A DNA stretch of 64,000 nt from positions 124,001-188,000 of IMG/VR virus record IMGVR_UViG_3300026484_000007; one strand, written 5' to 3'. Position 1 is the first letter of the stretch, and every line of letters begins with the position of its first letter. Below, in pieces: positions 4,443 to 52,329 of this stretch. The notes under the pieces were generated by a model. It saw only the letters and a program-made list of their open reading frames with translations. It did no database searches and was not told the origin of the DNA. Both the position numbers and the translations under genes were made by a program.

Positions 4443-4686
4443 AAAAAAAGGACCCTTTAGTTCTCACCGCGGAGGCTTGCGGTATTCCGAGGAGCTTTCG
4501 GTCACGTTAACTTACTCACTCCCCGAAATCCGGGCCTCGTTGGATCCTACTAAAAGGTCCTGTTGACGGCCGAATTCGGTACTACTTAGTACCTACTGTT
4601 GGCCGCCTGCTAGGGATCTTTAGAAGATCCCCCTTGATAAGGTTTGGACCTACAACGTAAATCGTAGATCCTCTACCTTATCTACT
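4443..4686 (-). ncRNA. putative structured ncRNA 1 (~240 nt, four stem domains, two loop-E motifs)
   Basis: GC-rich intergenic island. Stems at 4636-4682, 4613-4631, 4565-4607 and 4450-4560, then a U-tract; directly downstream of the promoter at 4679-4722. Confidence 0.75.
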
Positions 4687-4722
4687 ATTTATATATCTAA
4701 TAAACGTTTACGAGTTCTAAAA
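4679..4722 (-). promoter_or_regulatory. phage promoter TTTTAGAAC...TATATAAATAG; 44 bp identical to 50901-50944
   Basis: Exact repeat upstream of both structured RNAs; same motif family as the cassette promoters. Confidence 0.75.
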
Positions 4723-12343: not shown

Positions 12344-12382
12344 TTTTTCTCCTTTGATTGTATTTTGATTGTTTTTATAATA

Positions 12383-36813: not shown

Positions 36814-36984
36814 TTAAATTCTCCCACTCTCAGCATCTTTGCTATACGAAGAAGCTCTCACTTCTTCGATCTCATCAGCATCTACTGCTGCTTCTGCTTC
36901 TTCATTCACTTCCTCGTCTGCAGCTTTTACAGCTGCTAATGCAGCAGCTACAGCTGCTGCAATTGTTTCATTACTTTGTGCCAT
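36814..36984 (-). CDS. Ala/Glu-rich microprotein (56 aa)
   Basis: Manual translation MAQSNETIAAAVAAALAAVKAADEEVNEEAEAAVDADEIEEVRASSYSKDAESGRI; has its own promoter, leader hairpin, SD and terminator. Confidence 0.75.
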   Translation of the reverse strand: MAQSNETIAAAVAAALAAVKAADEEVNEEAEAAVDADEIEEVRASSYSKDAESGRI

Positions 36985-37137
36985 GTTTGCTCCTTTTTAA
37001 TTTTTTTAATTTAGAGGATGGTTTGGCTACCATCCTCTGCTATTAAAATATCAATGAATCCGTTAAGGAGTTCTAATATTTAGAGCGTTTTTCTTAATCG
37101 TGAAACATTGATATTATAGCGAGTTCTAAAACCATTT

Positions 37138-38909: not shown

Positions 38910-39509
38910 TCATTTGATAAAGTCTAAGGGCATAAGCCCTTTTTTAACTTCATCCCAAAGAGCCCAAATTGCAAACTTCCCAGTTTCACTAGAAAGTTCC
39001 TTGAACTCCTTAATAAAGTCATCTATCTCTTTTTTTAGAGATTCATTATCCCAAATTAATGGGATAATTTTTGCGAAATGGGCTCTTGACCCTAATTCGC
39101 AGATTAATTTTACCTCTTCCGAGGTGATAGACGGTTTTACTAAACCGTCCAATTTCGCGGCCACAGTTGCCGCAAAATCCATCGCAGCTTCAATTGCTGC
39201 AATAGATTTTTTGTTGTACGATAGATAGCCGCTGCTATCTATCGTTACTAAACTTCTATCAGAAAACTTAACCCTCGGGTTAAGTTTTCTGATTTTTTCA
39301 AATCGTGGATCGATCAGTCTCTGATCAATAATCCATGTCTCGCCTCCACACATGAACGCCATGTCGTTCGGGAGACTTAATAATGGGTACGATGTGTACC
39401 CAAACTCAATCCCTGAAACAATTCCAGGGAATTCAATACCAGGGATAGCACTTACCATCCCCGTCAATTTTTTTTCAATTTTTTCCTTAGCTACTCTTCT
39501 TCTAGCCAT
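38910..39509 (-). CDS. hypothetical early-type protein (GC-richer)
   Basis: SD-preceded ATG at 39509; cassette-type promoter upstream. Confidence 0.7.
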   Translation of the reverse strand: MARRRVAKEKIEKKLTGMVSAIPGIEFPGIVSGIEFGYTSYPLLSLPNDMAFMCGGETWIIDQRLIDPRFEKIRKLNPRVKFSDRSLVTIDSSGYLSYNKKSIAAIEAAMDFAATVAAKLDGLVKPSITSEEVKLICELGSRAHFAKIIPLIWDNESLKKEIDDFIKEFKELSSETGKFAIWALWDEVKKGLMPLDFIK

Positions 39510-39634
39510 TCTTTTTTCCTCCTTACCATTTTTTACATACGTTCGCCTTACACGGCGAACAAAAAAACTCGCGAGAAACAAGTGGTATGCCTTGTTCCTC
39601 ACTATAATAATATCAATGATTTACAATCGACTTC

Positions 39635-39675
39635 TTAATTATTAATTAATTATTAATTAATTATTAATTAATTAT
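39635..39675. repeat. 11-bp tandem repeat (TTAATTATTAA), about 3.6 copies
   Basis: Seen directly, just downstream of the RHH gene. Confidence 0.7.
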
Positions 39676-40808: not shown

Positions 40809-41720
40809 TTATAATACATAACCCTTTACATTCTCGAATTCATATAATTTATCTTTCGGAAATACTACGTTTGGTGGAAATTCCACATCTTCTAAAAGAT
40901 AAGCTCCACCTCCAGCAATAATTACTTTTTCCGATGTCCCAAGAATTTTCTTTTCTGAAACAAGAATACTATTGAATAATTTTTGAATAAAATTATTTTT
41001 TAATTCAGTGATCATTTCTGGAATTCCTTCGACTTCTCTTCCACCGAAAACATATTTTTTCTTTAATAAAATTTTAATTGCTTCTTGTTCAGTAAATTTA
41101 TCTTTAAATTTTGCTTCTAGCCAATTAGTAAAAGGTCTTATGATACTTACGACTCCGTGAGTAGGAAACGATTTACATTTAGCTCTAATTGGCATATTAT
41201 CTTGGAAAGCTAAAAAGTTGATAGTATTGAATCCAATATCGATCACTGCCGCACTTTCAGGAGTTGTTCCAGTATCATGAATATAACTATAATATACTCC
41301 AGCGCCTTGAGGAATTATATTAATATTATTGATGTTTAACGTAATTCCATTTACAGTGATTGTTTTTAATTTTTCAACGAATCTTTCTTTTTCGCTCCAG
41401 TCGGCTAAAGCTAAACCAGTTCTTAAATCAATATCCTCGATCAATTTTCCATCTTTAATTAAATTTAATTTATTTAAAACATGAAATAAAATCAGTGGAC
41501 CGAATTCTTCTAAAAATTCATATTTAGTTGTTGTAAAACTTTCATCGATTGCTACGTCTCCAACTCTATATTTTTTACCGTTGTATTCGTAAATTTCGTC
41601 TTCGCCATAATTAATTCCAGTATCAATAGCGAAAGAGATCGCTGTGGGTAATTTGAATAATTTTCCATTCGCAGATAATTTTGTACTACTATACCCTATA
41701 TCTAAACCTAATCTATACAT
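40809..41720 (-). CDS. actin-like ATPase, ParM/StbA family
   Basis: GLDIGYSSTK, IPQGAG, VIDIGFNT, IIAGGGA, FENVKGY. Confidence 0.88.
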   Translation of the reverse strand: MYRLGLDIGYSSTKLSANGKLFKLPTAISFAIDTGINYGEDEIYEYNGKKYRVGDVAIDESFTTTKYEFLEEFGPLILFHVLNKLNLIKDGKLIEDIDLRTGLALADWSEKERFVEKLKTITVNGITLNINNINIIPQGAGVYYSYIHDTGTTPESAAVIDIGFNTINFLAFQDNMPIRAKCKSFPTHGVVSIIRPFTNWLEAKFKDKFTEQEAIKILLKKKYVFGGREVEGIPEMITELKNNFIQKLFNSILVSEKKILGTSEKVIIAGGGAYLLEDVEFPPNVVFPKDKLYEFENVKGYVL

Positions 41721-42400
41721 TAATTCTCCTTTTTAATAATTTTAGTTTTTTCTGTTGTCTGAGCATGTTCTTTGTATTGCTGAGCTGCTAGCTTAATTAT
41801 TTCTTTATTTCTCTTTTTTGGATCTTTCTTAATTTTTGCGTATGAATCTAAAAAAGATTCTTTTGCTTTTTTAATAATATTATTGTAATTTTTTTTATGT
41901 CTTTTTAATAATTTATAGAATTCATCTTTTTCGATTAAGTAATCGTTTGATAAATGTAAATTATACATTTTATTAATAAGATCCATAAAAGATTCTTCTA
42001 GTTCTTTTTTAAATAAATCTACGAAACCTTTTTTATGCAAATAATGATAAAAAGGACTATCTTTATCAATAATGATCTTAAAAAGATGCTTCTGAGTTTC
42101 AAAAATATATCTAACGGGAAATTCTTGATATTCTTTGTCTTTATTGAATTTAGCCGCTTCTAATCCTAAATTTACTATTTTACAATAATCATGATATAAT
42201 TTTTCTAAAATAAATTCATCTGATATTTTATAAGGATGCTTATTTTGAGGATCGTATTTTTCATCGATGCTTTTAAAAAAATATAATAAAGTATCTTCGA
42301 CGAATTCTTTAGCAAGGGTTTGGGAATTTCGATGATTATTATCAATGATTACCGCTGAATGTTTAGCGAGATCCTCAGCTTTTTCTTTTAATTTTTTCAT
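41720..42400 (-). CDS. hypothetical protein
   Basis: 226-aa ORF with SD. Confidence 0.7.
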   Translation of the reverse strand: MKKLKEKAEDLAKHSAVIIDNNHRNSQTLAKEFVEDTLLYFFKSIDEKYDPQNKHPYKISDEFILEKLYHDYCKIVNLGLEAAKFNKDKEYQEFPVRYIFETQKHLFKIIIDKDSPFYHYLHKKGFVDLFKKELEESFMDLINKMYNLHLSNDYLIEKDEFYKLLKRHKKNYNNIIKKAKESFLDSYAKIKKDPKKRNKEIIKLAAQQYKEHAQTTEKTKIIKKEN

Positions 42401-42445
42401 TTTTTCTCCTTTTTAATTTTTTTAAGCAAATAAAAAACGGGAAGC

Positions 42446-42829
42446 TTAAGTTAGATAAACTAACTCGCTTTCCCAAAATTCGGCGCTAAGCGTCGATTGC
42501 TGAAGCTCTTTTTTTAGAGCCTCAGCCAATCTCATGACCGCGGGTTTGTATAATTCGCGGTTGCAAAATTGAGGGTTGCATGTACCCTCAATTTTGATCA
42601 CACTCTCACCACCGACTGGGCATCCCCAGTCGGTATTATAAACTACGGCCGCGGGCGAAACCGCAGCAGAAATGTATTCGCCGAATTCTTCGAATTCGGC
42701 TTTAGCCAATTGCTGCCAAAGGGCAGCAATTTTATTTGCTAACTCAGGAGCCGCAACTCCTGAGATATTGTGGAAGTAGCCTTCCGCTACCCCCACAACC
42801 ATTCTAAAAGATATTGTTGTCTTCTTCAT
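42446..42829 (-). CDS. putative SAM / SAM-AMP lyase-like protein
   Basis: Y64, E75 and Q111 spacing plus LAEALKKELQQSTL resemble phage SAM lyases (from recall). Confidence 0.5.
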   Translation of the reverse strand: MKKTTISFRMVVGVAEGYFHNISGVAAPELANKIAALWQQLAKAEFEEFGEYISAAVSPAAVVYNTDWGCPVGGESVIKIEGTCNPQFCNRELYKPAVMRLAEALKKELQQSTLSAEFWESELVYLT

Positions 42830-42955
42830 TCTTTCTCCTTTTGATTTTTTTTGCTATTTATATATCAATGTTAAAAAAGGAGTTTTTGAAAATTATTTAA
42901 TAATTATTTAATAATTATTAAATAAAAAATAAAAATAAAAAAACAGAGAGTGGGC

Positions 42956-43114
42956 TTAATACAGTCCACTCTCAACCCCTTCTCTCCAATGAGAGAAAAG
43001 AGTATTGCGCGCCTTAACCGGCGCATTTGGGTGAGTTGTTCTCACCCATTTTGTAAATTTTCTGTATTCGGCGCGAGTGATACTCACACCATTAATTATT
43101 TTCTTTCTCATCAT
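42956..43114 (-). CDS. small early-type protein (52 aa)
   Basis: Manual translation MMRKKIINGVSITRAEYRKFTKWVRTTHPNAPVKARNTLFSHWREGVESGLY; promoter, SD and terminator present. Confidence 0.7.
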   Translation of the reverse strand: MMRKKIINGVSITRAEYRKFTKWVRTTHPNAPVKARNTLFSHWREGVESGLY

Positions 43115-43198
43115 TTCTCCTTTTTATTTTTTTTGCTATTTATATATCAATGATAAAAAAAGAGTTTTTAAAATTAAAAAATAACACCGCGGAGAAGA

Positions 43199-43396
43199 CT
43201 ACTTTTGTAATCTTTCCGCGATGTTATTTAGTAACATCGATTCTGTTATTTTTGATTCGGCCTCGAGAATGAGGTCGTACGCCTCACTCCCGAATTCGAA
43301 TTTTTCTTCTAATTTTTCAAGAAGGTTATACACCTCCTCGAGTTTTTTTTTAGATTCCTTTTCAAGGAATCTAATTTCTTTTTTTGCTAAATTCAT
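43199..43396 (-). CDS. small early-type protein
   Basis: Cassette promoter and SD. Confidence 0.7.
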   Translation of the reverse strand: MNLAKKEIRFLEKESKKKLEEVYNLLEKLEEKFEFGSEAYDLILEAESKITESMLLNNIAERLQK

Positions 43397-43458
43397 TCTT
43401 TCTCCTTTGATTTTTTTTGCTATTTATATATCAATGATAAAAAAGGAGTTTTTTAAAT

Positions 43459-45015
43459 TTATTTTAACACGAAAACATTGTTCTTTGTTCGTGTAATTCC
43501 TACATAAAGTAATCTTAAAAATAAATTATAATCGGTTTCATAAAGATTAATGAAGTCTCTTAAATCTATAAAAACTTCATCCAAAGTTTGTCCTTGAAGT
43601 TTATGGATTGTGCTCGCGTAAGCATAAGTAACATCAGCACATAAATCATTGAAATTGTATGCAAATTTCCAAAAGTTCTTTTTAGAATTTTTAGAGATCT
43701 TTCTTTGATTATTCATTGTTTTCGCAATATCAAAAACTGCTTCTTTATATAATGGAAAAAGATCTTCTTTAGATCCATCTCCCAAAGGAACTAAAAATTT
43801 ACTTTTATTTTCTGCTGTTAATAAAAAAGCATTGAATTTTATAGGTTTAAGTAAATACGAAGCTTTATTATCTTCAAATAAAAATGGATAGAGATCTTTT
43901 AAAGATGCTAAATAGTCTGGTAAGATTTTTCTAAGTCTATCGATGACTTCTTGAAATTCTTTAATCTTATTCAAAGTAAAAGTTACCAATTCTGGTTCTT
44001 TGATAACTTTAGTCTCTTCTCCATTTGTGAAAATATTGCAAGTGCTTAGTAAATTTCTATCAGTTAATTCATTAGAATTATTAGAAAAAACTATATAATT
44101 ATACGGAGCATTAAATATTAATTTATCTCCTTTTGAATATAATTCATCAGGATTTTTTACTTCTGGATCAAATCTTCTAAAATGGATATTATAATAATTT
44201 ACAAAATTATTTGTAAAAGATCCAATTTTGATTCTTTTTTCATTTGAGAATGATTCTGTTGAATCCGTTAAATCAACAGAATCCATCGGTAAAATTGTCT
44301 CTCCGAATCTATGCTCTAAAAACTTATTAAAAAAATCATTAAATTCAAATTCTCCATATACATGAAAATGATCTATTAAAGATACAATCTCTGAAAGCGG
44401 AGCTTTTTTCTTATTTTCTTCGTATTCTTTAATTAAAAATCTTACTTTTTCAAAGATCTCAAAAAGATCGTTTTTTGTTCTAAGTATCTTTTTTAGAACT
44501 ATTCTATCATAAGGTTCGTCAAAAATTGGAGATCTTGTTTCTTTTACTGGAGGTAATTGATATGGATCTCCAATAAATAAAATATCAAAATTTTTTAAAT
44601 ACTTATTAATGATCCAAAAAAGATCCTTATCGATCATTGAAATTTCGTCGATAATAAAAAAGTCTGCAGAGATCATCATATCTCTTAATTTCGGGACAAA
44701 AATTCTTTCACCGAATTCATTAATATCTGGACGAATTTCAAAATAAGAATGAATTGTCGTAATATTTACTCCTTTTATATTTTGCTCAGATAGCATATTA
44801 TGAATTACTATTGAACTTTGATGAGTAGGAGTTAATATTTGAACGGATCTTTTTTGCTCTTTTAACATTTTTAATAATTCAACGAGAGTCGTCGTTTTTC
44901 CTGTTCCTGCTGATCCAGTAAGGATCAGTTTTCTACCATAACCAAGTTTTTTTGGATCTTCTTTAAAATACTCTAAGACTTTTTGCTGTTCTTCATTTAA
45001 TTTTATTTCTCCCAT
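43459..45015 (-). CDS. Dda/RecD-like SF1B helicase
   Basis: GSAGTGKTT, IIDEISM, GDPYQLPPV, TIHKLQGQT, YVGITR. Confidence 0.9.
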   Translation of the reverse strand: MGEIKLNEEQQKVLEYFKEDPKKLGYGRKLILTGSAGTGKTTTLVELLKMLKEQKRSVQILTPTHQSSIVIHNMLSEQNIKGVNITTIHSYFEIRPDINEFGERIFVPKLRDMMISADFFIIDEISMIDKDLFWIINKYLKNFDILFIGDPYQLPPVKETRSPIFDEPYDRIVLKKILRTKNDLFEIFEKVRFLIKEYEENKKKAPLSEIVSLIDHFHVYGEFEFNDFFNKFLEHRFGETILPMDSVDLTDSTESFSNEKRIKIGSFTNNFVNYYNIHFRRFDPEVKNPDELYSKGDKLIFNAPYNYIVFSNNSNELTDRNLLSTCNIFTNGEETKVIKEPELVTFTLNKIKEFQEVIDRLRKILPDYLASLKDLYPFLFEDNKASYLLKPIKFNAFLLTAENKSKFLVPLGDGSKEDLFPLYKEAVFDIAKTMNNQRKISKNSKKNFWKFAYNFNDLCADVTYAYASTIHKLQGQTLDEVFIDLRDFINLYETDYNLFLRLLYVGITRTKNNVFVLK

Positions 45016-45026
45016 ATTTGCTCTCC

Positions 45027-46778
45027 TTACATAAAATTAATTTTAGCATTCGGATATGTTCCTAATACGTTATTTCTGATAATAGTAGTTACTGATTTAT
45101 TCAAAGTTTCAAACATTTCCGTAACTGGAAATAATGCAATAGGAGTTGGTTTTCCTTCATGTAATCTTGTAATTCTCCCAAGAGATTGAACGATAGTAAT
45201 TCTTCCAATTATCGGTGATCCAAAAATGATACCACTTAAAGAACTTTTATCGAATCCTTCTCTAAGAAGATTAAAGTTGCTTATTAATATCTTTGATTCT
45301 TTAATTCTTTGGTAATAAAGATCTAAAGCTTTTTGGATATTAATCTCTTGAAGTTCTAGCGATTTTACACGTTCTTCTTTGTATAATAAATCAGCTTCTT
45401 TTCTCTTTAATTCTTTATTTTTTACTTTAAGATTTAATTCTTCTTTGAATTCTTTCAGTTTATTTTTTAAAATTTTATTTTCATCTTTAGCAATCTGAAT
45501 TGAATCTTGTTTAGAATCTCCTTTTAAAACTAAAGTTTCGTCTTGAAATTCTGGGTATAATCCTAATAATATATCAGCCAATTTTTTAGCTAATTTATTA
45601 GTGCTAAAAAGTATTACTACTTCCCTATTAGTATCTCTAAACCATTTAACCCACTGAGTAAGAAATTGCAAATAACTATCTTTATTATATAAATACATAT
45701 TATATAATGAAAGCATCATAGGATAATCATTCATACGTTGTTTTAAAGCAAAAGCTTCTTTTTCATTAAAATGAATAAAATCATTATTTAATCTTTGAAT
45801 GTAAATTTCAGGCGTTAGAACCTCCGCATCCGCTTCGATTAAAACATCACCAATACTAGTATTTAATAAAAATTTATTAAGATCTTTACGGAATGGAGTA
45901 GCGCTTAATCCCATAACGTTACATGTTTTAAATAAAGATAAAGTTTTACTATAACCATATGCACCAAAACCGTGGCATTCATCAGCTAAAACAAAGTCAA
46001 CTTCAGAATATAATTCTTGTAAAAGATTAATTTTAATTCTTTTAATTTGGCTTAATAAAGATTGTGGTTTAGTAATAATTACTTTAGCTTTCATTGCTTC
46101 TTCGATATCTTTTATTTCGGATCCTTGAAGGATACATATATCTTCTTCTTTTAAATCAGTAAACGTTAAAAATGCTTGTTTCCATTGATCTTCTAAGATT
46201 ACTTTTGGAACGATTACTAAAGTTTTTTTAAAGATCTGTCCGAGAAAAATTCCCATAAACGTTTTGCCAACTCCTGGAGCTGCTTGGAGAATTCCTCTGA
46301 TCTTTTTTTGATCATTAATGATCTTTAAAAGATGCTTTATTATAGGAACTTGATTTTCTCTTGGATCATTATTTACTATATAATTCTTATAATTCTTATT
46401 AGAAATATTTTTTATCATTGATATATCCAGTTCATTTCCACCGGCTTCCCCAAGATCAACTTCGTATCTTTTTTCGATCTCTTGTATATTTCTTATGAAA
46501 TCTACGAATTCGTATTTGTTCCCTTGATTATCCATCGCAATGAATTCTTCTAATTTTAACATATTTTCTTCCCAAAAGAATCTTGGAAGAAGAACCCACC
46601 CGATAGTTATGTCTTCTATTTCTAATCTTTTTGGATCGATGTATACTTGATTTTCATCGAAATACATTACTCCTTCGTCAAGATCTTCGATTTTAAATTT
46701 CCATCCTTGATTTAATTTATATTTTGGATTTTTTAATTCTTGATAAATTTCATATTTTATAAAAACTCCGTTTTCCAT
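45027..46778 (-). CDS. SF2 helicase (UvsW-like)
   Basis: APGVGKT, DECH, LSATP, EGFD, QSLGRITR. Confidence 0.88.
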   Translation of the reverse strand: MENGVFIKYEIYQELKNPKYKLNQGWKFKIEDLDEGVMYFDENQVYIDPKRLEIEDITIGWVLLPRFFWEENMLKLEEFIAMDNQGNKYEFVDFIRNIQEIEKRYEVDLGEAGGNELDISMIKNISNKNYKNYIVNNDPRENQVPIIKHLLKIINDQKKIRGILQAAPGVGKTFMGIFLGQIFKKTLVIVPKVILEDQWKQAFLTFTDLKEEDICILQGSEIKDIEEAMKAKVIITKPQSLLSQIKRIKINLLQELYSEVDFVLADECHGFGAYGYSKTLSLFKTCNVMGLSATPFRKDLNKFLLNTSIGDVLIEADAEVLTPEIYIQRLNNDFIHFNEKEAFALKQRMNDYPMMLSLYNMYLYNKDSYLQFLTQWVKWFRDTNREVVILFSTNKLAKKLADILLGLYPEFQDETLVLKGDSKQDSIQIAKDENKILKNKLKEFKEELNLKVKNKELKRKEADLLYKEERVKSLELQEINIQKALDLYYQRIKESKILISNFNLLREGFDKSSLSGIIFGSPIIGRITIVQSLGRITRLHEGKPTPIALFPVTEMFETLNKSVTTIIRNNVLGTYPNAKINFM

Positions 46779-46905
46779 TTCTTTATCCTTTTTTTAATTT
46801 TTTTAAGCAAATAAAATAATTTTGCGAATTCGACGATTTTCCGAACTCGCAATCAAAACACTAATTATATCTTTAAAATCTAAAGAAAAAGAAGACCTGC
46901 GAGAG

Positions 46906-47193
46906 TTATAATTTAACTCTCACCGGGTCTTCAAACCACTCCATTGTTGCGTTAGATGGAAGAATGATCTTCCATCTTTTTCTGGCAGTCGCCACTACCT
47001 CTTTTGGGTTGGTAGTGGCAAACACTGCCATGTCGCCGCTACGACCTGCAAGGCCGTAGACAGCGACTTTTATGTATTTGTCGCTGTCGTATGGTTTTAC
47101 CCATACGACAGCGACTTTAATTCCCTGAATATTTTGACTTGGCGCCTTTTGCGCCAAGTCGATTAATTCAAAAATATTTAAATTCAATTTCAT
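46906..47193 (-). CDS. small early-type protein
   Basis: Cassette promoter, SD, GC-richer. Confidence 0.7.
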   Translation of the reverse strand: MKLNLNIFELIDLAQKAPSQNIQGIKVAVVWVKPYDSDKYIKVAVYGLAGRSGDMAVFATTNPKEVVATARKRWKIILPSNATMEWFEDPVRVKL

Positions 47194-47272
47194 TCTTCCT
47201 CCTTAATTTTTTTTGCTATTAGATTATCAATGATTTAATTAATCATTATAAAATAAAAAGAAAAAGAAGAGG

Positions 47273-47539
47273 TTAGAGGTATTCGATCTTAACGATCTCC
47301 TCCTCTAAAAACACTCTTCTTTTTCTCTCTCCTCTCGGAGAGATTAAGTAGGCTTCTTTCAGCCCACCTTTCCCCGAAAGGAGATATCCCGTGCTTTTGC
47401 TGAATGCCCATTCAGCAAAAGCATTATAAATCCCGTATCCTCCCGCACTATAGTACGGGAACGGGATCACTTCCGAATTCCTTTTTTCCCAAATCAGTTC
47501 GAGCTTCCACTCGAACTGATATTTGAAATCTCTTTTCAT
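47273..47539 (-). CDS. small early-type protein
   Basis: Cassette promoter and SD. Confidence 0.7.
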   Translation of the reverse strand: MKRDFKYQFEWKLELIWEKRNSEVIPFPYYSAGGYGIYNAFAEWAFSKSTGYLLSGKGGLKEAYLISPRGERKRRVFLEEEIVKIEYL

Positions 47540-47645
47540 TCTTCCTCCTTAATTTTTTTTTGCTTAATTGATATCAATGAGGTTGTGGAAGAGTTCTAAA
47601 AATTTTAATGAAATAAAAAAAATTTTGATAAAAAGAAAGCTTGAG

Positions 47646-47930
47646 TCAAATGGCTCTTTCGAGCCATTTGACTGCCTTCTTCAAGGCTTTCACCTTGAAG
47701 TGAAGGTCGTCGACCTTCACTTTGAGCTCAAACTCTTCTGAGCTCAAAATATCCATATGCATGAGGAAGTCAACTTCCCCATGCATTTTAATATACTCGG
47801 CTTCAGCCGCTTCAAGAGCGGCTTCAGCAGCCTCAGTTTCCCTAAGAGCGGCTTTCGCCGCTCTTAGATTTTTTTTCTCTTCTTTAAGAGCGGCTTTCGC
47901 CGCTCTTAATAATTTTTCAATTTTTTCCAT
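47646..47930 (-). CDS. small helical early-type protein with an LRAAKAAL duplication
   Basis: Cassette promoter and SD. Confidence 0.7.
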   Translation of the reverse strand: MEKIEKLLRAAKAALKEEKKNLRAAKAALRETEAAEAALEAAEAEYIKMHGEVDFLMHMDILSSEEFELKVKVDDLHFKVKALKKAVKWLERAI

Positions 47931-48052
47931 TCTTCCTCCTTGAAATTTTTTTTTGCTATTAGATTATCAATGATACATAGATGTAATTCTAAAAAAAATT
48001 TTAAAAAAATTAAGAAAATTTAATAAATAAAAAATTAAGAAAAAAGCAACGG

Positions 48053-48247
48053 TTATTCCGGAGCGGGTAGCTCAACTACCTCAACTCCGTAACTAGGGTT
48101 GCTTTCTTCTTGGAGGGCGCGGACATATGCCTCCGCGTCCTCCTTTTCCCAGAATACTTTGGATACGGAACTGATTCCGTATCCAAAGTAACCATCTACG
48201 AAGTAGTACGCTACTCCGTAGATTTTTTTATTTTCTAAATTTTCCAT
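48053..48247 (-). CDS. small early-type protein
   Basis: Cassette promoter and SD. Confidence 0.7.
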   Translation of the reverse strand: MENLENKKIYGVAYYFVDGYFGYGISSVSKVFWEKEDAEAYVRALQEESNPSYGVEVVELPAPE

Positions 48248-48357
48248 ATCTCCTCCTTAATTTTTTTTGCTATTAGATTATCAATGATACATAGATGTAA
48301 TTCTAAAAAAAATTTTAAAAAAATTAAGAAATAAAAAGAGATTGGATGATCTGGAGT

Positions 48358-48561
48358 TTAAAACTCCAAGTCATCCAAATCATCTAATTCTAGCAGCTTC
48401 TCTAAAGCTGCTGCTTTTTCAGCAGCAGCTTTTGCTACTTTAGCCTCATACGAGGCCAAAATTGCGGCTTCTTTAGCCGCTTTTTTTGCTGCTGCAGCTT
48501 TTGCTGCAGCTGTTTCTGAGGCTCTTTGAGCCTCAGAAACTCTTTCAATTAGAAATTTCAT
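48358..48561 (-). CDS. Ala/Lys-rich microprotein with acidic tail
   Basis: SD-preceded ATG at 48561. Confidence 0.7.
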   Translation of the reverse strand: MKFLIERVSEAQRASETAAAKAAAAKKAAKEAAILASYEAKVAKAAAEKAAALEKLLELDDLDDLEF

Positions 48562-48681
48562 TCTTTCCTCCTTAAATTTTTTTTGCTTAATTGATATCAA
48601 TGATATAAAACGAAGTTTTAAAATAATTTACATGTACTTAAATATACTTAAATACTTAAAATTGCTCACAAAGGATATAAT

Positions 48682-49317
48682 ATGTTTTTTATAAATGAAA
48701 TGACGGAGAAAAAAATAAATAATATCGCTAATATTATTATCGAATTAAATACTCTTTTAGAAGAAGCGGCAGGGAAATACTCAATGCCTTTAACTGGAGT
48801 TCCAAAAGCAGGAAAAAGTTTAATATCAGGTGGTTTAGATCATGTTTATAAAAAAAGCAAAGATAAATATTTTATAGAGAAATTATCGCCGGATATGGAA
48901 GGAAAATGGACTTTTGATACCGGAAAGTTAGAATTAGCTAGAGAAATGAAAAATAAATTAAAAGACAAAAATGAGTTTTTTGATGATAGATTCGTAAAAA
49001 TAAAAAATACTCATATTCCTAATTTAATTAAAAATTTTGATAAAACTGTGTTTGATTTGGGAGGTATTCCTTCGAAAGAAAACGAGAGTTTTATCGATAA
49101 TATACAAAAAAGTTCAATTTTAAATGATAAAAAATTCGTACCAGTCGTTCTTTCTCCTGATAGACAGAAATCGTACGAATGGCAAAAGTTTTTCAATGAA
49201 AAATTCGAAACCGATCCTATAATTTATACTCCAAATTGGAATTTTAAAAAAGATATAAAACAACAATCGATATATCATGCTAATGAACTTCTTAACCGAA
49301 TCCAAAAAAGATTATAA
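48682..49317 (+). CDS. P-loop ATPase of the Csx3-associated (AAA-type) family
   Basis: GVPKAGKS Walker A, SPDMEGKW (cf. CPDGEGxW, from recall), VFDLGG Walker B; convergent with csx3. Confidence 0.7.
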   Translation: MFFINEMTEKKINNIANIIIELNTLLEEAAGKYSMPLTGVPKAGKSLISGGLDHVYKKSKDKYFIEKLSPDMEGKWTFDTGKLELAREMKNKLKDKNEFFDDRFVKIKNTHIPNLIKNFDKTVFDLGGIPSKENESFIDNIQKSSILNDKKFVPVVLSPDRQKSYEWQKFFNEKFETDPIIYTPNWNFKKDIKQQSIYHANELLNRIQKRL

Positions 49318-49338
49318 ATAAAAAAACATAATCCCTGC

Positions 49339-49635
49339 TTACACAGGGATTATATCTCCGACTTTTACGTCGGGTGTGTGGCTTTCAGCCACAATTCCCC
49401 CGCTTAGGCGAGGGTCGTAGCACGCCACGAATGGCGTGCAATGGTACTCATGTACCATCGCGGCAAAGAGCCATATCGGCCCTCTACCGCTTAAAATTAT
49501 ACCTACCCCAGGTTCAACCTGAGGCAATCTTTTAATTGCCTCAGGTAACTCCGCAGGGGTAATAACCCCACTTGTGAGCTCAAAGCTCACAAGTGCAATT
49601 TTATCGCTTACTTCTTTTACATCATATTTTATCAT
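49339..49635 (-). CDS. csx3: CRISPR ring nuclease Csx3/Crn3
   Basis: GVITPAEL, GIILSGRGPIWLFA..H.YH, YDPRL.GGIV..SH. Confidence 0.9.
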   Translation of the reverse strand: MIKYDVKEVSDKIALVSFELTSGVITPAELPEAIKRLPQVEPGVGIILSGRGPIWLFAAMVHEYHCTPFVACYDPRLSGGIVAESHTPDVKVGDIIPV

Positions 49636-49701
49636 CGTCTTTCTCCTTTTGATTTTTTTGCTATTAGATTATCAATGATATACAAATCAGTTCTAAAAAA
49701 A

Positions 49702-49842
49702 TCACCAGAAGTTTTTATTCTTGTACTTCTGGCGATTGTATTTCTTAGAGTTCTTTTGAACTCTAGTATGGGGCTTTAATCCGCCCCATGTCTGACGAGT
49801 TTTGATCTCGTCTTTTTTGATTTTAATTGAAAATTTTTTCAT
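49702..49842 (-). CDS. small basic peptide (46 aa)
   Basis: Manual translation MKKFSIKIKKDEIKTRQTWGGLKPHTRVQKNSKKYNRQKYKNKNFW; promoter and SD present. Confidence 0.7.
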   Translation of the reverse strand: MKKFSIKIKKDEIKTRQTWGGLKPHTRVQKNSKKYNRQKYKNKNFW

Positions 49843-49998
49843 AATTTCTCCTTTTGATTTTTTTTAATTTTTCTGATAAATATATATCAATGTCTAAAAA
49901 AATTATTATAAAAATAAAAACTTAACAACTCTAAGATGTGTTTTTTCCGCTTTTGCGTCTGAGTTTAGCACCTCTCAGTCCGTCAGCCTCTTGGCTTC

Positions 49999-50151
49999 TT
50001 ATTCAGAAGTCGCAAGAACAGCTGCTTCGAAAGCAGCCTCAAGAGGCATTTCAGCCTCTTGAACTGCCTGAAGCATCGCTGCTACAAGCGCTTCAGAAGG
50101 GGCATTAAGCCCCTTCGAAGCCAAGAAAGCTAAAATCGCTTTCTTGTCCAT
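49999..50151 (-). CDS. Ala-rich microprotein (50 aa)
   Basis: Manual translation MDKKAILAFLASKGLNAPSEALVAAMLQAVQEAEMPLEAAFEAAVLATSE; promoter and SD present. Confidence 0.7.
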   Translation of the reverse strand: MDKKAILAFLASKGLNAPSEALVAAMLQAVQEAEMPLEAAFEAAVLATSE

Positions 50152-50379
50152 TTTCCTCCTTTATAATTTTTTTGCTAATTAAATATCTAATAAAACTAAA
50201 GCAGTTCTAAAAATTCTTTAAAAATAAAAATGAAGGAGGGAGAGAGGAAAGAGAAAGAAAAGAGAGGGAAAATGTCGCTATATTTCTAATAAAACTTTTT
50301 AGTTCTAAAATCGATTTTAAAATAATTTAAAAATAATTTAAAAAATAAATTTTTTTGATAAATAAAAGTCTGGCGAGAG

Positions 50380-50697
50380 TTATAATAACTCCTTCCAAAC
50401 TTCGTGCAAATCGTTTGCTGCTTTATATAATTTTTTTTTCAATTTCTTTAATTTTTTGATTTTGCCTCTATTTACACGAAGCTCGTCCTCGAGCTTCGTT
50501 TTATGGCGGGAATACTCCGCCATTTCTTCCCCAGAGGCTCCTACCTCTGGGAAGTTTAATCTTTCATTCTGCAACCAGCAGAACTTGAGGTGCTCTCGCA
50601 CCTCTTTTAATTCTTTTAATTCGCATTTTACTTTCTCAGCCTCATATCTGAGGCTATTTTCATAATCGAATACTTCATTTTTTAAATCTTTTCTCAT
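50380..50697 (-). CDS. small coiled-coil early-type protein
   Basis: Cassette promoter and SD. Confidence 0.7.
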   Translation of the reverse strand: MRKDLKNEVFDYENSLRYEAEKVKCELKELKEVREHLKFCWLQNERLNFPEVGASGEEMAEYSRHKTKLEDELRVNRGKIKKLKKLKKKLYKAANDLHEVWKELL

Positions 50698-50772
50698 TTC
50701 TTTCTCCTTTGATTTTTTTTGCTAATTAAATATCTAATAAACCAAAAGCAGTTCTAAAAATTCTTTAAAAAT

Positions 50773-50908
50773 AAAAAAGATAGGAGGAGTCCGCATAAGC
50801 GAACTCCCGGACCTCAAAGGGTCACGTAGCTTTATGACACAGATATGGTTACTCGTTCCGAAGAACTTTCACCATATCGAAAGGTGCCATAAAGCTACCC
50901 TATCTACT
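50773..50908 (-). ncRNA. putative structured ncRNA 2 (~135 nt, multi-way junction, loop E, UUCG tetraloop)
   Basis: Closing stem AGAUAGG/CCUAUCU, 15-bp and 8-bp stems, GAAA/GAGUA internal loop, GUUC-UUCG-GAAC, two more hairpins, U-tract; own promoter. Confidence 0.8.
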
Positions 50909-50944
50909 ATTTATATATCTAATAAACGTTTACGAGTTCTAAAA
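50901..50944 (-). promoter_or_regulatory. phage promoter identical to 4679-4722
   Basis: 44-bp exact repeat. Confidence 0.75.
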
Positions 50945-51000
50945 TAATTTAAACCATTTTTTCTAACGACAAAAAAACGCGTGAGATCTTAAATAGATCA

Positions 51001-51546
51001 TCACGCGCGAATATCGATTAAGAACTTTTTTTCTTTGAGAGTATTTACTCTCATTTGAAGTTCCTTAATCGTTTTTGGATCTTCAAAAGATCCTTCTGTA
51101 ACTTCGCAAGAACTTGTCTCTAGACTTTCGATAATTTCTTCATCTAGGACCTTTCTTGTTTTTTTAGAAGAATCTTTTTTCGATTCTTTTTTTACTTTTT
51201 CAATTTTGAGAGATTCTTCTATATACAATCTCTCATAACCCTCAGCTAATCTGAGGGTTTCAATAGCAAGATCTTTGAAGTAAGCTGCTTTGCTTTTAGC
51301 AGCTCTCACTTCATTAATCTTTTCATGGCGCTCTTTTTTAAGCGCTTTTTTCAAAGATTTGATCTCCTCGTTACGTTTTTCAATAACGCTTTTTAGGAGA
51401 TCAATCTCCTTTTTTTGGTCCTCAATTTTTTTATCGCGGCTGAGGATCATTTCCGCTAACTCTTTTGGCGAATACTTTGTCGCCAGTTCAATAACGCGTT
51501 TGAACTTATCAAATACGTTATTGATTTTTTCCTCTAATTTTTTCAT
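51001..51546 (-). CDS. coiled-coil protein
   Basis: 181-aa ORF with promoter motif upstream. Confidence 0.7.
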   Translation of the reverse strand: MKKLEEKINNVFDKFKRVIELATKYSPKELAEMILSRDKKIEDQKKEIDLLKSVIEKRNEEIKSLKKALKKERHEKINEVRAAKSKAAYFKDLAIETLRLAEGYERLYIEESLKIEKVKKESKKDSSKKTRKVLDEEIIESLETSSCEVTEGSFEDPKTIKELQMRVNTLKEKKFLIDIRA

Positions 51547-51603
51547 TTTAAATCCTTTTTTAACTATTTTTGATATATAAATATCAATGTTAAAAAGGAT
51601 CTT

Positions 51604-52329
51604 CTAAAGTCTTTTGAAAATTAAATTAAATCTTTCTACCGGAACATCTCCAATTTTTTCGCCTTGAATTTTATTCCAATTAATAATGTACTTTGGATCT
51701 CGAGCATCTTGCGTACTAAATAAACTTATATTTTTATAAGAATCTAATAATTCTTTTTTGAATTCTAATTGTTTATTTTCAATTGTTTTATAAATACAAA
51801 AATGATCCCCAGGAGATCCATAAAGATTACTCGACGGAATTTCATACTCTATCAATGAATTAACTTTAAAACAATTAAGATTACTAAAAGGTCTAATAAT
51901 TTCTTTTATTAATTCATTAGTAATTCTATGATCTTCATGATTATCAGATGAATTAAAATACACATTAAGATTAAAAAGCTCGCAATTGTCTGGATTTTTT
52001 TCTTCGTATCTTTTTTGGATCTTTTTTAAAATACTAAGGAGATATTGTTTTATATTTATTTTATGATCAAAAAACTCAGTATCAATTCTAGAATTATTTA
52101 CGAAATATCTAGATTCTGGGATATTTAACTTTTCCATATTAATTTCAAAAGCTTTTAAACGCTTTTCTGAGATAGAAATATCGTTCAATTCTCTTCCGCT
52201 GCTAAGAATTACAAAATAACTATTTTTTAGAACTTCAGATTTTTTAAAGAAATAATCTGCCAAAATTCCCCCACATCCTATCTCAATATCATCTAAATGA
52301 GCTCCGATAAATAAATTTATTTCTTGCAT
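51604..52329 (-). CDS. PIG-L family deacetylase
   Basis: AHLDDIEIGCGG, HEDH. Confidence 0.85.
   Translation of the reverse strand: MQEINLFIGAHLDDIEIGCGGILADYFFKKSEVLKNSYFVILSSGRELNDISISEKRLKAFEINMEKLNIPESRYFVNNSRIDTEFFDHKINIKQYLLSILKKIQKRYEEKNPDNCELFNLNVYFNSSDNHEDHRITNELIKEIIRPFSNLNCFKVNSLIEYEIPSSNLYGSPGDHFCIYKTIENKQLEFKKELLDSYKNISLFSTQDARDPKYIINWNKIQGEKIGDVPVERFNLIFKRL

Follow-up and report, generated by a model that had tools for sequence, protein, structure and literature searches.

A cassette island in a jumbo phage with homologues of anti-CRISPR enzymes and hairpin-tiled RNAs

A giant phage from a hydrothermal vent metagenome carries a bank of small, self-contained gene cassettes, at least two of which encode homologues of enzymes that destroy type III CRISPR signal molecules, and the RNAs predicted from these cassettes are packed end to end with stable hairpins, a feature that we could not find described. 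The sequence analysed here (the window) is a 64,000-nucleotide stretch of a 272.6 kb, 97% complete, 26% GC virus record (IMGVR_UViG_3300026484_000007) that encodes RNAP beta-like subunits of its own multisubunit RNA polymerase. On the minus strand, 13 small ORFs and 2 non-coding units each have their own promoter/leader block and most end in a terminator. One cargo is Csx3/Crn3, a cA4 ring nuclease family member with all catalytic residues, and another is a SAM-AMP lyase homologue. We propose that this is the main hyperplastic counter-defence island of the phage, a reading to which we assign a probability of roughly 0.7.

Results

An array of promoter-gene-terminator cassettes

A first-pass annotation, made from the sequence alone, described about 13 short, GC-rich genes at 42446-51590, each behind a near-identical upstream block and often ending in a terminator stem that overlaps the stop codon. 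That observation is borne out by our analysis. A direct-repeat search finds families of 10-11 copies of the upstream block, and a degenerate 24-nt block motif has 14 matches in the window, all on the minus strand, against 0.19 ± 0.44 in shuffles; genome-wide there are about 24 sites, all on the minus strand. The repeat pairs named in the annotation also hold. The stretches 47947-48017 and 48261-48331 are 71/71 identical, 50167-50230 matches about 50714 at 62/64, and 42827-42886 matches about 43393 at only 50/60 ungapped because of a 1-nt indel, with a core that is 97-100% identical.

The block combines a promoter, with a TTAGAAC -35-like element, about 17 nt, and then a TTGATAT/TAGATAT...TAAATAG extended -10-like element, with a standard leader that is A-rich, unstructured, about 25 nt long and carries a strong AAGGAGG ribosome-binding site. 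A generic sigma-70 scan is not enriched in the region (37 sites against 34 expected); because the phage has its own polymerases, the block may be read by a phage enzyme. Stop-codon-overlapping hairpins followed by T-runs end most cassettes. Terminator-like sites number 33 against 5.1 ± 2.4 in shuffles, but most of these are internal hairpins. Cassette ORFs have GC 0.34-0.48 and GC3 0.32-0.51 (one, c9, has GC3 0.24), against GC3 0.16-0.19 in flanking backbone genes.

The units are listed below in window coordinates, with z the folding z-score of the RNA against shuffles.

42430..42893 (-): cassette c16; block 42830-42893, ORF 42446-42829 (127 aa, SAM-AMP lyase homologue), stop-overlapping terminator hairpin plus T-run at about 42430-42470; z -11.1
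42935..43176 (-): cassette c15; block 43115-43176, ORF 42956-43114 (52 aa, no assigned function), terminator; z -7.6
43175..43460 (-): cassette c14; block 43397-43460, ORF 43199-43396 (65 aa, helical, no assigned function), terminator; z -9.6
43459..46778 (-): two backbone helicase genes that split the island, an SF1 Dda/RecD-like helicase (43459-45015) and an SF2 ResIII/DEAD helicase (45027-46778), identified by Pfam; low-GC (GC3 0.17-0.18), not hairpin-tiled, with a different upstream block
46885..47250 (-): cassette c13; block 47194-47250, ORF 46906-47193 (95 aa, no assigned function), terminator 46899-46923; z -16.2
47250..47603 (-): cassette c12; block 47540-47603, ORF 47273-47539 (88 aa, an ORFan with no homologue among 5.8 billion proteins), terminator; z -11.0
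47625..47996 (-): cassette c11; block 47931-47996, ORF 47646-47930 (94 aa, coiled-coil-like), terminator; z -18.2
48035..48310 (-): cassette c10; block 48248-48310, ORF 48053-48247 (64 aa, resembling small DUF7336-type phage proteins, which is a lead only), terminator; z -9.3
48330..48625 (-): cassette c9; block 48562-48625, ORF 48358-48561 (67 aa, Ala/Lys-rich), terminator; z -15.1
48682..49317 (+): P-loop protein, 211 aa, Walker A GxPKAGKS, convergent with csx3; low-GC, not hairpin-tiled and not a cassette
49322..49700 (-): cassette c7; block 49636-49700, ORF 49339-49635 (98 aa, Csx3/Crn3 cA4 ring nuclease homologue), 17-bp terminator (49322-49359) overlapping the stop codon; z -13.2
49690..49905 (-): cassette c6; block 49843-49905, ORF 49702-49842 (46 aa, very basic), stop-overlapping terminator; z -10.3
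49935..50214 (-): cassette c5; block 50152-50214, ORF 49999-50151 (50 aa, Ala-rich), followed by 3' hairpins; z -9.6
50222..50312 (-): non-coding cassette nc2; promoter 50276-50312, then a pure C/U-rich RNA of about 46 nt (50230-50275) that is unstructured, is complementary to AAGGAGG-type ribosome-binding sites and ends in a T-run; no ribosome-binding site or ATG
50345..50761 (-): cassette c3; block 50698-50761, ORF 50380-50697 (105 aa, helical, no assigned function), terminator; z -11.2
50778..50946 (-): non-coding cassette nc1; promoter 50906-50946, then a structured RNA of about 128 nt (50778-50905) whose last hairpin is the terminator (50785-50808); no Rfam family and no tRNA found; a paralogous unit lies at window about 4545-4720; z -9.0
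50965..51610 (-): cassette c1; block 51547-51610 (the most divergent copy), ORF 51001-51546 (181 aa, coiled-coil), stop-overlapping terminator; z -13.1
36814..37060 (-): the same promoter class outside the annotated range; promoter at about 37033-37080, a 5' hairpin leader and a 56-aa Ala/Glu-rich ORF (36814-36984); mean z -7.9
38910..39640 (-): the same style outside the annotated range; a hairpin-tiled 199-aa ORF (38910-39509; GC3 0.38, mean z -9.4) behind a CATTGATAT-type promoter and a long structured leader

The first-pass annotation requires some correction in that its range also holds the two helicase genes and the plus-strand P-loop gene, none of which is a cassette, and in that it did not separate the two non-coding units, which have the promoter but no ribosome-binding site or ORF. 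The same cassette type also occurs outside its range, at the two window positions given last in the list and at genome 215.4-217.3 kb.

It is possible, although unlikely, that several of the small ORFs are not translated and that the hairpin RNAs are themselves the product, for example as decoys or sponges for RNA-binding defence proteins, with the open frames a side effect of GC-rich stems. Two units in the island and at least six elsewhere are clearly non-coding yet share the promoter and, the unstructured nc2 RNA aside, the structure; c12 has no homologue at all, and several ORFs encode low-complexity Ala/Lys/Glu-rich peptides. However, all 13 ORFs (46-181 aa) start at an ATG 6-9 nt after a strong AAGGAG-type ribosome-binding site, and in each only the annotated frame is open, the other sense frames holding 2-22 stops. 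Three of the products (Csx3, c16 and c15) have homologues, and the 5' region of the RNAs is kept open as if for initiation.

Cargo homologous to type III CRISPR off-switches

The first-pass identification of csx3 is confirmed (Pfam PF09620, E 1.5e-26; TIGR02579, 91.8 bits against a cut-off of 55.4). The c7 product matches AfCsx3 (PDB 3WZI) at E 5e-18, with equivalents of S44, G45, R46, I49, H57, H60, D69, R71 and H80 all present. A second cargo, c16, which the annotation had left among the unknowns, is identified by homology as a SAM-AMP lyase (PADLOC Mvol_0529-fam, E 4e-33; PDB 9LQD/9GAD, E 5e-28; 40% identity to PDB 9GAB). Its AlphaFold model (pLDDT 92) matches 9GAB/9LQD at TM 0.89-0.91 and rmsd 1.5 Å, and its W68, C70, E75 and Q111 align with W64, C66, E71 and Q108 of the C. 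botulinum enzyme. The lyase could nevertheless act on SAM rather than SAM-AMP.

The plus-strand P-loop protein is homologous to the AAA half of Csx3-AAA / AAA-Csx3 fusion proteins, both by alignment and by PADLOC Csx3-AAA models (E 5e-14, 4e-12 and 3e-7), and its structural model (pLDDT 84) has a generic SIMIBI/kinase P-loop fold. Homologues sit directly after csx3 in L038, an unrelated small element, and in the sequences L043/L044. Nine of the 13 ORFs have no assignable function.

Previous work lends context to the anti-defence reading: a phage SAM-AMP lyase is a candidate AcrIIIB4 (PMC12255297), viral ring nucleases act as anti-CRISPRs (PMC12409355), and type III systems preferentially target early phage genes (PMC13575424). 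In cells, however, Csx3 and SAM-AMP lyase are the host's own off-switches, and in one heterologous system SAM-AMP degradation was even needed for immunity (PMC12255297), so the direction of the effect is inferred.

Cassette content differs between relatives

An invariant gene order in relatives had been named beforehand as an outcome that would count against the modular reading, and it was not what we found. Relative L040/L039 (38-62% amino acid identity, syntenic with 62-75 kb of this genome) has the same TTTTAGAAC...AGCAAAAAAA...AGGA-ATG block in front of three small, GC-raised, structured genes, and its c16 homologue is inserted between two genes that are adjacent in this genome. A homologue of c15 also sits in this relative (L040:2161-2340; 35% identity over 43 aa, E 5e-8). 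A second relative, L037, keeps the helicase and, at the same relative place, the P-loop gene, but has two unrelated genes where c9-c13 lie here, and no csx3. Related phages carry the same block but different cassettes at different places, as in T4 PeSL hyperplastic regions. Because only distant relatives were found, cassette turnover is inferred over long divergence.

A tentative alternative is that the repeated blocks are only conserved promoters that play no part in gene gain and loss and the cassettes ordinary fixed morons, with the differences from relatives reflecting ordinary illegitimate recombination over long divergence. Promoter function alone can keep blocks alike, and the relatives compared are distant (38-64% amino acid identity). 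Yet the identical stretch reaches 71 nt and extends upstream of the promoter into the preceding unit's trailer, which is more than promoter function needs, and the same cassette (c16) sits in different genomic contexts in two lineages, with clean flanks.

Cassette RNAs are tiled with predicted hairpins

The cause of the extra GC, which the first-pass annotation missed, is not just foreignness but dense, sense-strand-specific RNA hairpins, and we consider this the most unusual feature of the locus. Cassette RNAs carry about one perfect 8-15 bp hairpin per 40 nt. Folding z-scores are -7.6 to -18.2 against shuffles and -4.5 to -10 against synonymous-codon shuffles in 13 of 13 ORFs. There are about 80 local hairpins, with spans under 60 nt, longest perfect stems of 9-15 bp per cassette and a modal loop of 4 nt, and they persist at 70 °C in silico whereas the first 40-50 nt stay open. 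Perfect hairpins number 4.3 per kb in the island against 0.36 per kb elsewhere, and the probability that a 12-mer is unpaired is 30-100 times lower than in backbone genes. These structures are thermodynamic predictions, with only three sequences on hand for covariation. Across 277 genes, GC3 correlates with structure at r = -0.77, the outliers being the class II-driven genes. The signal tracks this promoter class genome-wide.

Two cellular csx3 genes give z of -0.02 and +0.54, AR9 early genes give +2.0 to -2.6 with 0.28 hairpins per kb, and a SAM-AMP lyase homologue in another large phage is not tiled. The element L038, which carries the csx3 + P-loop pair, is also tiled, with z of -12 to -21.

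We considered whether the extra GC and the hairpins could be a by-product of foreign origin or of a DNA-level or mutational process, such as quasi-palindrome correction or cruciform-related functions, rather than selected RNA structure. GC3 is two to three times the backbone value, and L038 is tiled throughout, non-coding stretches included, so genes could have come from such elements. We regard this explanation as very unlikely, as the signal survives synonymous-codon shuffles, which keep composition and protein. In addition, the sense strand folds better than the antisense strand in 13 of 13 ORFs, with 96 G-U pairs against 33, a threefold excess of pairs that cannot act in DNA. The tiling also stops exactly at the standard open leader and is tied to the phage's own promoter, and the homologous csx3 and lyase genes elsewhere are not tiled.

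Discussion

We propose that the island is built from autonomous expression cassettes, each comprising a promoter/leader block, one small ORF or, in two units, a non-coding RNA, and a hairpin terminator that overlaps the stop codon. In this view at least two cargoes are enzymes captured from type III CRISPR loci, each of which would remove a Cas10-made second messenger, Csx3/Crn3 by cutting cA4 and c16 as a SAM-AMP lyase, with the neighbouring P-loop protein being the AAA partner otherwise fused to Csx3. Made soon after infection, these proteins would keep CARF- and CorA-type effectors switched off. The near-identical terminator-promoter blocks would also give homology for gain, loss and relocation of cassettes, as PeSLs do in T4-type phages.

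Superimposed on this, we propose that RNAs from this promoter class are selected at the RNA level to fold, piece by piece as they emerge, into a chain of short stable hairpins, with only the first 40-50 nt left open for ribosome loading. Our best guess is that this shields the earliest and most abundant phage RNAs from RNA-directed attack, meaning crRNA-guided recognition by type III complexes and/or single-strand-specific RNases, although the P-loop partner gene is not tiled.

Our data establish the anatomy, the homologies, the conserved catalytic residues, the RNA-level structure signal with its link to the promoter class, and the variable cassette content in relatives, whereas early timing and promoter strength (which are assumptions), the polymerase that reads the block, recombination at the blocks, the enzymatic activities and the purpose of the hairpins are all inferred. 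The first-pass interpretation, that the repeats are strong early promoters and recombination handles and that the unknown cargoes are good anti-defence candidates, is supported in part: the blocks look like promoter plus standard leader, the units end in terminators and the island is an anti-defence island by homology, but early expression and recombination at the blocks are not shown.

It is also possible, if less likely, that the hairpins are general RNA armour for expression, stabilizing a few very highly expressed transcripts against heat-driven hydrolysis and housekeeping RNases in a warm vent host with an AT-rich transcriptome, in which case the link with anti-CRISPR cargo is incidental. 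GC-rich islands mark structured RNAs in AT-rich thermophiles, the sample is from a hydrothermal vent, the stems survive at 70 °C in silico, the accessibility contrast with backbone genes grows with temperature, and non-coding RNA from the same promoter is equally structured (nc1). However, about 260 other genes of the same phage, which must work at the same temperature, are not tiled, and the phage tRNAs have only 49-58% GC, which does not point to a hyperthermophile.

A further, doubtful possibility is that the hairpins serve transcription rather than RNA survival, with fast local folding of nascent RNA behind an uncoupled (possibly virion-delivered) phage polymerase preventing R-loops in easily melted AT-rich DNA, backtracking, and Rho loading on strongly transcribed units. 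The strictly local hairpins are as co-transcriptional folding would favour, the signal tracks a promoter class and not a gene function, and the phage encodes multisubunit RNAP subunits. Against this, the open 5' 40-50 nt with a strong ribosome-binding site suggest that ribosomes do load early, and AR9, which also uses a virion RNAP on 26.5% GC DNA, shows no such tiling in its early genes.

Genome context and cassette architecture

The 272,602-bp virus record that carries the island is 97% complete by CheckV, was assembled from a hydrothermal vent metagenome and has a GC content of about 26%. Its genes run on the plus strand at 0-78 kb and 188-272 kb, and on the minus strand at 78-188 kb. The genome encodes several RNA polymerase beta/beta'-like proteins (phiKZ-like split subunits), a RecJ-like nuclease, an ATP-dependent ligase, an actin-like protein and five tRNAs with encoded CCA ends, and it is therefore a jumbo phage of a bacterium with its own multisubunit RNA polymerase(s). 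At window 10931-13477 on the minus strand, a nicotinamide phosphoribosyltransferase (470 aa) sits next to a cytidylyltransferase/NMNAT-Nudix-like protein (364 aa), which looks like the phage NAD+ reconstitution pair that counters NAD-depleting defenses and would be a second, separate counter-defense module in the window. No near relative was found in GenBank phages or IMG/VR: a megablast of the island against 50,697 phage records gave no match, the helicase of the island found no relative in IMG/VR and only remote hits of 35% identity or less among GenBank phages, and searches of IMG/VR with the block motifs gave only single chance hits. Relatives were finally reached through protein homologues and their contigs. 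Besides the source sample, three other runs contain 10-16% of the island's words.

The array of repeated blocks and small genes described in the first-pass annotation is real. A repeat search gives families of 10-11 copies of the upstream block, and a degenerate 24-nt version of it matches 14 times in the window, always on the minus strand, against 0.19 expected; the block pair that the annotation had called an exact repeat is 71/71 identical. Read directly on the minus strand, each unit has a TTAGAAC (or TTAGAAT/TTCAAA) element, about 17 nt, a CATTGATAT or TATTAGATAT element and a TAAATAG-type element, then GC followed by a run of 7-9 A, an AAGGAG(G) ribosome-binding site and an ATG. Thirteen such ORFs (46-181 aa) are present, and in every one only the frame starting at that ATG is open. 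Most end in a hairpin that overlaps the stop codon and is followed by a T-run, and this putative terminator sits directly upstream of the next putative promoter. The features of the island that are discussed individually are as follows.

42446-42829, minus strand: ORF of cassette c16, a predicted SAM-AMP lyase of 127 aa
43459-46778: two ordinary low-GC helicase genes that split the island
48682-49317, plus strand: low-GC gene for a P-loop protein, the predicted partner of Csx3
49339-49635, minus strand: ORF encoding Csx3/Crn3
50222-50312, minus strand: unit nc2, with the promoter but no ribosome-binding site or ORF
about 50778-50946, minus strand: a second unit with the promoter but no ribosome-binding site or ORF

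The last two units therefore specify small RNAs, as judged from sequence. No Rfam family matches at the gathering score anywhere in the window, the best sub-threshold hit has an E-value of 0.45, and no tRNA or tmRNA genes were found. The nc2 RNA (50230-50275, minus strand) is 46 nt of pure C/U-rich sequence (plus a few A) and is unstructured. Because its 3' part is complementary to AAGGAGG-type ribosome-binding sites, it could be an anti-Shine-Dalgarno-like regulator or sponge. We also considered that the non-coding units might be CRISPR-repeat mimics, but rejected this because no repeat-like periodicity was seen, in the absence of host repeats for comparison.

The conserved layout of TTAGAAC, about 17 nt and TG-A-TATAxx fits an extended -10 promoter, although a generic scan shows no enrichment of sigma-70 sites and the phage has its own RNA polymerases. 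Divergent pairs of conserved elements of about 70 nt each, joined at a GTTCTAAAA-nn-TTTTAGAAC core, occur at window positions of about 14034, 24010, 31724 and 62316 and at about 30 loci genome-wide. Two arm types occur, each TTAGAAC + TnnTATATATC followed by a conserved leader; they share the TTAGAAC element with the island promoters, lie in intergenic spots even where all genes run one way, and may be bidirectional promoters or protein-binding sites. A third conserved upstream block, TTATTTGCTTAAAAAAATTAAAAA followed by a ribosome-binding site, lies at window 34915, 38886, 42433, 46814 and 59568 on the minus strand and precedes backbone genes, including the helicase, the 226-aa gene at 41720-42400 and the RecJ-like gene; it is probably a different promoter or leader class. 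Finally, the motif TTTTTGTCGTTAGAAAA (up to 2 mismatches; 43 copies genome-wide, in the window for example at about 50975, 52394 and 62348) follows many terminators, and because its strand always matches the local direction of the genes, it may mark transcription-unit boundaries.

Predicted cargo of the island

ORF 49339-49635 is Csx3/Crn3 by homology. It scores 92.5 bits against Pfam PF09620 (cut-off 21; E 1.5e-26) and 91.8 bits against the TIGR02579 equivalog model (cut-off 55.4), and it matches AfCsx3 structures at E 5e-18. Every residue that Athukoralage et al. (PMC7371418) describe as conserved or essential is present in the HMMER alignment to 3WZI, namely H57, H60, H80, D69 and R71 and the S44-G45-R46/I49 binding loop (AfCsx3 numbering). 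Like the viral ring nucleases that act as anti-CRISPRs (AcrIII-1/Crn2 family; PMC12409355) and cellular Crn3/Csx3, this small protein is predicted to degrade the type III messenger cA4, in the Csx3/Crn3 family by Mn-dependent cleavage, but its family is Csx3/Crn3 and not DUF1874. A published survey of 28,114 phage genomes listed AcrIII-1, Csx20 and Csx16 but not Csx3 (PMC12409355), and in our tblastn searches of 50,697 GenBank phage records neither Csx3 nor the lyase had a match.

ORF 42446-42829 had no Pfam, PHROG or NCBIfam hit, but it belongs to a large unnamed family with 356 clusters at E of 0.001 or better. It matches the PADLOC model Mvol_0529-fam at E 4e-33, which is type III-B accessory cluster 96 of Shah et al. 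(PMC6546367). Its AlphaFold model (pLDDT 92) superposes on the solved SAM-AMP lyases 9GAB/9GAD and on 9LQD at TM 0.89-0.91, rmsd 1.5-1.7 Å and 39-40% identity, with a phmmer E-value of 5e-28, and thus has the same PII-like fold by prediction. E75, C70, W68 and Q111 of the phage protein align with the catalytic Glu, the family-specific Cys, and the Trp and Gln of these enzymes; in a 48-sequence family alignment, E75 and Q111 are invariant and C70 is nearly invariant. SAM-AMP is the messenger of CorA-linked type III systems, and a phage SAM-AMP lyase has been proposed as AcrIIIB4 (PMC12255297). The protein described here differs from that phage enzyme in being a stand-alone 127-aa form without the N-terminal domain and in sitting beside a predicted cA4 nuclease in one island, and its preference for SAM-AMP over SAM is inferred from homology alone.

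The plus-strand ORF 48682-49317 encodes a P-loop protein with a GxPKAGKS motif that is invariant in an alignment of its homologues. It matches the ATPase half of the Csx3-AAA and AAA-Csx3 models (type III accessory clusters 35 and 67; Shah et al., 2018, PMC6546367): PADLOC model PDLC01045 is matched over positions 107-231 of 286 at E 4e-12, and PDLC01515 gives E 5e-14. Its predicted fold is a generic SIMIBI/kinase P-loop. Whereas the two domains are functionally linked as fusions in CRISPR loci, here they are separate neighboring genes, carried by a phage or mobile elements. The gene is convergent with csx3 in this genome, and homologues lie immediately downstream of csx3 in two unrelated, mobile-looking contigs, L038 (Logan SRR28863562, 3.6 kb) and L043/L044 (Logan contigs, GC 63%). 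In L043/L044 the pair lies in a run of small same-strand ORFs that includes PcfJ-like and HIRAN proteins, which looks like a mobile-element early or leading region. In the relative L037, by contrast, csx3 is absent next to the P-loop homologue. A complex prediction of a Csx3 dimer with the P-loop protein (score 0.18, mark 0.34) counts neither for nor against binding.

The remaining cargo resisted assignment. Pfam, PHROGs and NCBIfam searches with the small ORFs gave nothing significant, and a Protein Atlas search gave nothing usable for cassette c13. Cassette c10 resembles small DUF7336-type phage proteins, which is only a weak lead; c15 has a homologue in a related phage; and c12 is an ORFan without any homologue. 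The nine cargoes without an assigned function form a short, well-delimited list of anti-defense candidates. The proposal in the first-pass annotation that this is an anti-defense island is therefore supported by homology, and more specifically as an island directed at type III CRISPR signaling. Its interpretation as a whole is only partly supported, because its further proposals, that the blocks are strong early promoters and recombination handles, remain inferences.

Variation of cassettes among relatives

Protein homologues led to two distant relatives, which allowed us to examine a condition that the first-pass annotation had named as a refutation, an invariant gene order in relatives. The order is not invariant. 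L039/L040/L041, contigs of the first relative, share 38-62% identical proteins in the same order as the 62-75 kb region of this genome. They carry the same block (TTTTAGAAC ... ATTATTAGAGCAAAAAAA ... AGGA ... ATG) in front of three small, GC-raised genes that lie against the direction of their neighbors. One of these is the c16 homologue (54% identity), which sits between two genes whose homologues are directly adjacent in this genome. Another is the c15 homologue, 8 kb away from it, whereas here c15 and c16 are neighbors. L037, the second relative, keeps the helicase and, upstream of it, the plus-strand P-loop gene, but between them it has two unrelated, unstructured genes where this phage has c9-c13, and it lacks csx3.

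This is the behavior of a hyperplastic region, although it is seen over the long divergence that separates these genomes. Together with the composite terminator-promoter repeats, it is closest to the PeSL (promoter-early stem-loop) cassettes of T4-type phages (Arbiol et al., 2010, PMC2839356; Comeau et al., 2014, PMC4122927), in which composite motifs of a terminator and a strong early sigma-70-type promoter are repeated between small, mostly ORFan genes, cluster in variable regions between conserved core genes, and mark the places where gene content differs between relatives. The phage described here is not a T4-type myovirus but an unrelated AT-rich jumbo phage with its own multisubunit RNA polymerase, and its block also includes a standard leader and ribosome-binding site. 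The island therefore appears to work like PeSLs but is not a member of that lineage; recombination between motifs and excised mini-circles are further marks of PeSL regions, and recombination at the blocks is inferred here by analogy. Hairpin tiling of the cargo RNAs, described next, has not been described for PeSL regions. We considered and rejected an integron-like array, because each unit has its own putative promoter and terminator and there is no attC-like common 3' site; no integrase was noticed near the island, in the absence of a dedicated search.

Predicted hairpin tiling of the cassette RNAs

The raised GC of the cassettes is not simply foreign composition. Each of the 13 ORFs is predicted to fold far better than chance, with z of -7.6 to -18.2 against shuffles, -7.5 to -14.3 against codon permutations, and -4.5 to -10.0 against shuffles that only exchange synonymous codons. 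For csx3, a dinucleotide-preserving control gives z -13.2, with 0 of 200 shuffles as good. The predicted structures are chains of local hairpins, about 80 in 3.2 kb, with perfect stems that are typically 8-15 bp and loops that are mostly 4 nt and often GAAA. These are predictions at assumed temperatures, but the hairpins persist at 70 °C, while the leader, the ribosome-binding site and the first 10-15 codons stay unpaired. In csx3 the hairpins even run through conserved motifs, using G-U pairs and a few amino-acid changes. Perfect hairpins of 9 bp or more occur at 4.3 per kb in the island against 0.36 per kb elsewhere, and the median probability that a 12-mer is single-stranded is 0.0001 against 0.014 at 37 °C, and 0.004 against 0.11 at 60 °C, in comparison with backbone genes.

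The sense strand folds better than the antisense strand in 13 of 13 cases and uses 96 G-U pairs against 33, which places the selection on the RNA. Given the strand result and the synonymous shuffles, we regard an origin of the hairpins at the DNA level, or as a by-product, as very unlikely. Most of the 33 terminator-like sites at window 42300-51700 are internal cassette hairpins which, read on the antisense (plus) strand, are followed by T-runs because A-rich linkers precede them on the sense strand, and antisense transcription across the island would meet many terminators. The possibility that the five tRNAs of the phage serve the GC-rich codons of the cassettes is not supported by the codon tables.

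Tiling does not travel with the gene family, nor is it general to the early genes of AT-rich jumbo phages. Two cellular csx3 genes encoding 51%-identical proteins have z of -0.02 and +0.54, and a lyase homologue in another, 171-kb phage is not tiled. Early genes of phiKZ/AR9-type jumbo phages are likewise short units behind a long, highly conserved AT-rich virion-RNAP promoter element in phages with multisubunit RNA polymerases (PMC5312081), but the motif differs (AR9: AAATATATATTAT-N6-G), and small genes behind annotated early promoters of AR9 (26.5% GC, virion RNAP) show no excess RNA structure or raised GC3, with z of +2.0 to -2.6 and 0.28 hairpins per kb.

Instead, tiling follows a promoter class. 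Genome-wide, GC3 and structure correlate at r = -0.77, and the outliers are the genes behind the island-type (class II) promoter. We found about 24 such sites, which would drive strongly structured RNAs, coding or not, although the nc2 RNA is itself predicted to be unstructured. Every copy is on the minus strand, including those embedded in plus-strand gene blocks at 53-56 kb and 215-217 kb, an orientation bias for which we have no explanation. The copies at genome 215.4-217.3 kb (L034:7400-9300 in our labeling), outside the window, form a second small island with three near-identical non-coding RNAs, each made of three GC-rich hairpins, and a hairpin-tiled gene for a 206-aa membrane protein. 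The P-loop gene, which has no such promoter, is not tiled.

The related phage L040 shows the same link, with z of -7 to -8 against -1 to -2 for its neighbors. Among c16 orthologues, some hairpins are shared with the close relative and others are replaced by different hairpins at the same place, which hints at selection for structure as such, but with only three sequences this covariation comparison is not statistically usable. The style is also not confined to this phage lineage. In the unrelated contig L038 (GC 47%), an independent element with the csx3 + P-loop pair, all genes and the long non-coding stretches are hairpin-tiled (z -12 to -21), each gene is preceded by a conserved hairpin plus ribosome-binding-site block, and a GA-rich tract of about 220 nt lies at 180-400. 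The genes of L043/L044 also fold better than shuffles (z -4 to -11, one at -0.1), but the control is weaker at this GC.

Proposed mechanism and significance

The anatomy of the cassettes, the homologies of their cargo, the differences between relatives and the predicted RNA-level structure signal rest directly on the sequence comparisons above, whereas promoter and terminator activity, timing, cleavage of cA4, turnover of SAM-AMP, recombination at the blocks and the purpose of the hairpins are inferred. We propose that on infection the class II promoters fire, read perhaps by the virion-delivered or the host polymerase, and give short terminator-bounded RNAs. The open A-rich leader would load ribosomes, and the body would fold hairpin by hairpin as it leaves the polymerase. 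Csx3 would then remove cA4 and the lyase would remove SAM-AMP, so that CARF-type and CorA-type effectors are not activated, with the AAA partner assisting Csx3 in some way.

Type III systems sense RNA and preferentially target early phage genes (PMC13575424), and in this view the anti-CRISPR transcripts are themselves the most exposed targets. An RNA that offers almost no single-stranded 12-mer would be hard to pair with a crRNA, and would also be a poor substrate for single-strand-specific RNases such as cOA-activated Csx1/Csm6. We give this shield a probability of only about 0.3-0.4, and 0.3 in its widest form, in which hairpin tiling is a previously unrecognized RNA-level counter-defense: the first-expressed transcripts (anti-CRISPR mRNAs and companion small RNAs) would be written as a 'stealth mRNA' layer against type III complexes, other RNA-guided or RNA-sensing defenses and collateral RNases, while the standard open leader still lets ribosomes load. 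This layer would work together with the enzymes that destroy the CRISPR messengers, and it appears to be shared by a lineage of AT-rich jumbo phages and by at least one unrelated csx3-carrying element. It is also possible, though tentative, that the hairpins provide general stabilization for expression in a warm, AT-rich setting; a transcription-mechanical role seems unlikely.

Precedents for parts of this arrangement exist. The coding RNAs of the ssRNA phages MS2 and Qbeta are highly structured, and in AT-rich thermophiles a local GC excess is the tell-tale sign of structured RNA. Here, however, the RNAs are ordinary mRNAs of a dsDNA phage, restricted to one promoter class, and built from a uniform chain of short perfect local hairpins rather than a global fold. 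We found no description of hairpin tiling of a promoter-defined set of phage mRNAs, and no explanation for it, in the literature we could search, and it is the one component of the locus that may be new in kind. The cassette architecture extends a PeSL-like arrangement to a jumbo phage with its own polymerases, outside T4-type phages, and Csx3 and the lyase are new members of known enzyme families in a new combination and carrier.

One phage locus thus combines predicted enzymes against two different type III CRISPR messengers, cA4 and SAM-AMP, and includes the split form of the Csx3-AAA pair, whose ATPase has no known role; because the pair recurs in three mobile-looking contexts, that role becomes testable. 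The recoding of protein-coding genes at synonymous sites, and partly at the amino-acid level, into chains of predicted perfect hairpins, and only for one promoter class, is a strong and cleanly controlled signal. If it protects RNA from RNA-guided immunity or RNases, it is a new principle of phage counter-defense and a natural design rule for nuclease-resistant yet translatable mRNAs. If not, outliers in GC3 and folding z-score still give a simple screen for this class of genes in AT-rich phages.
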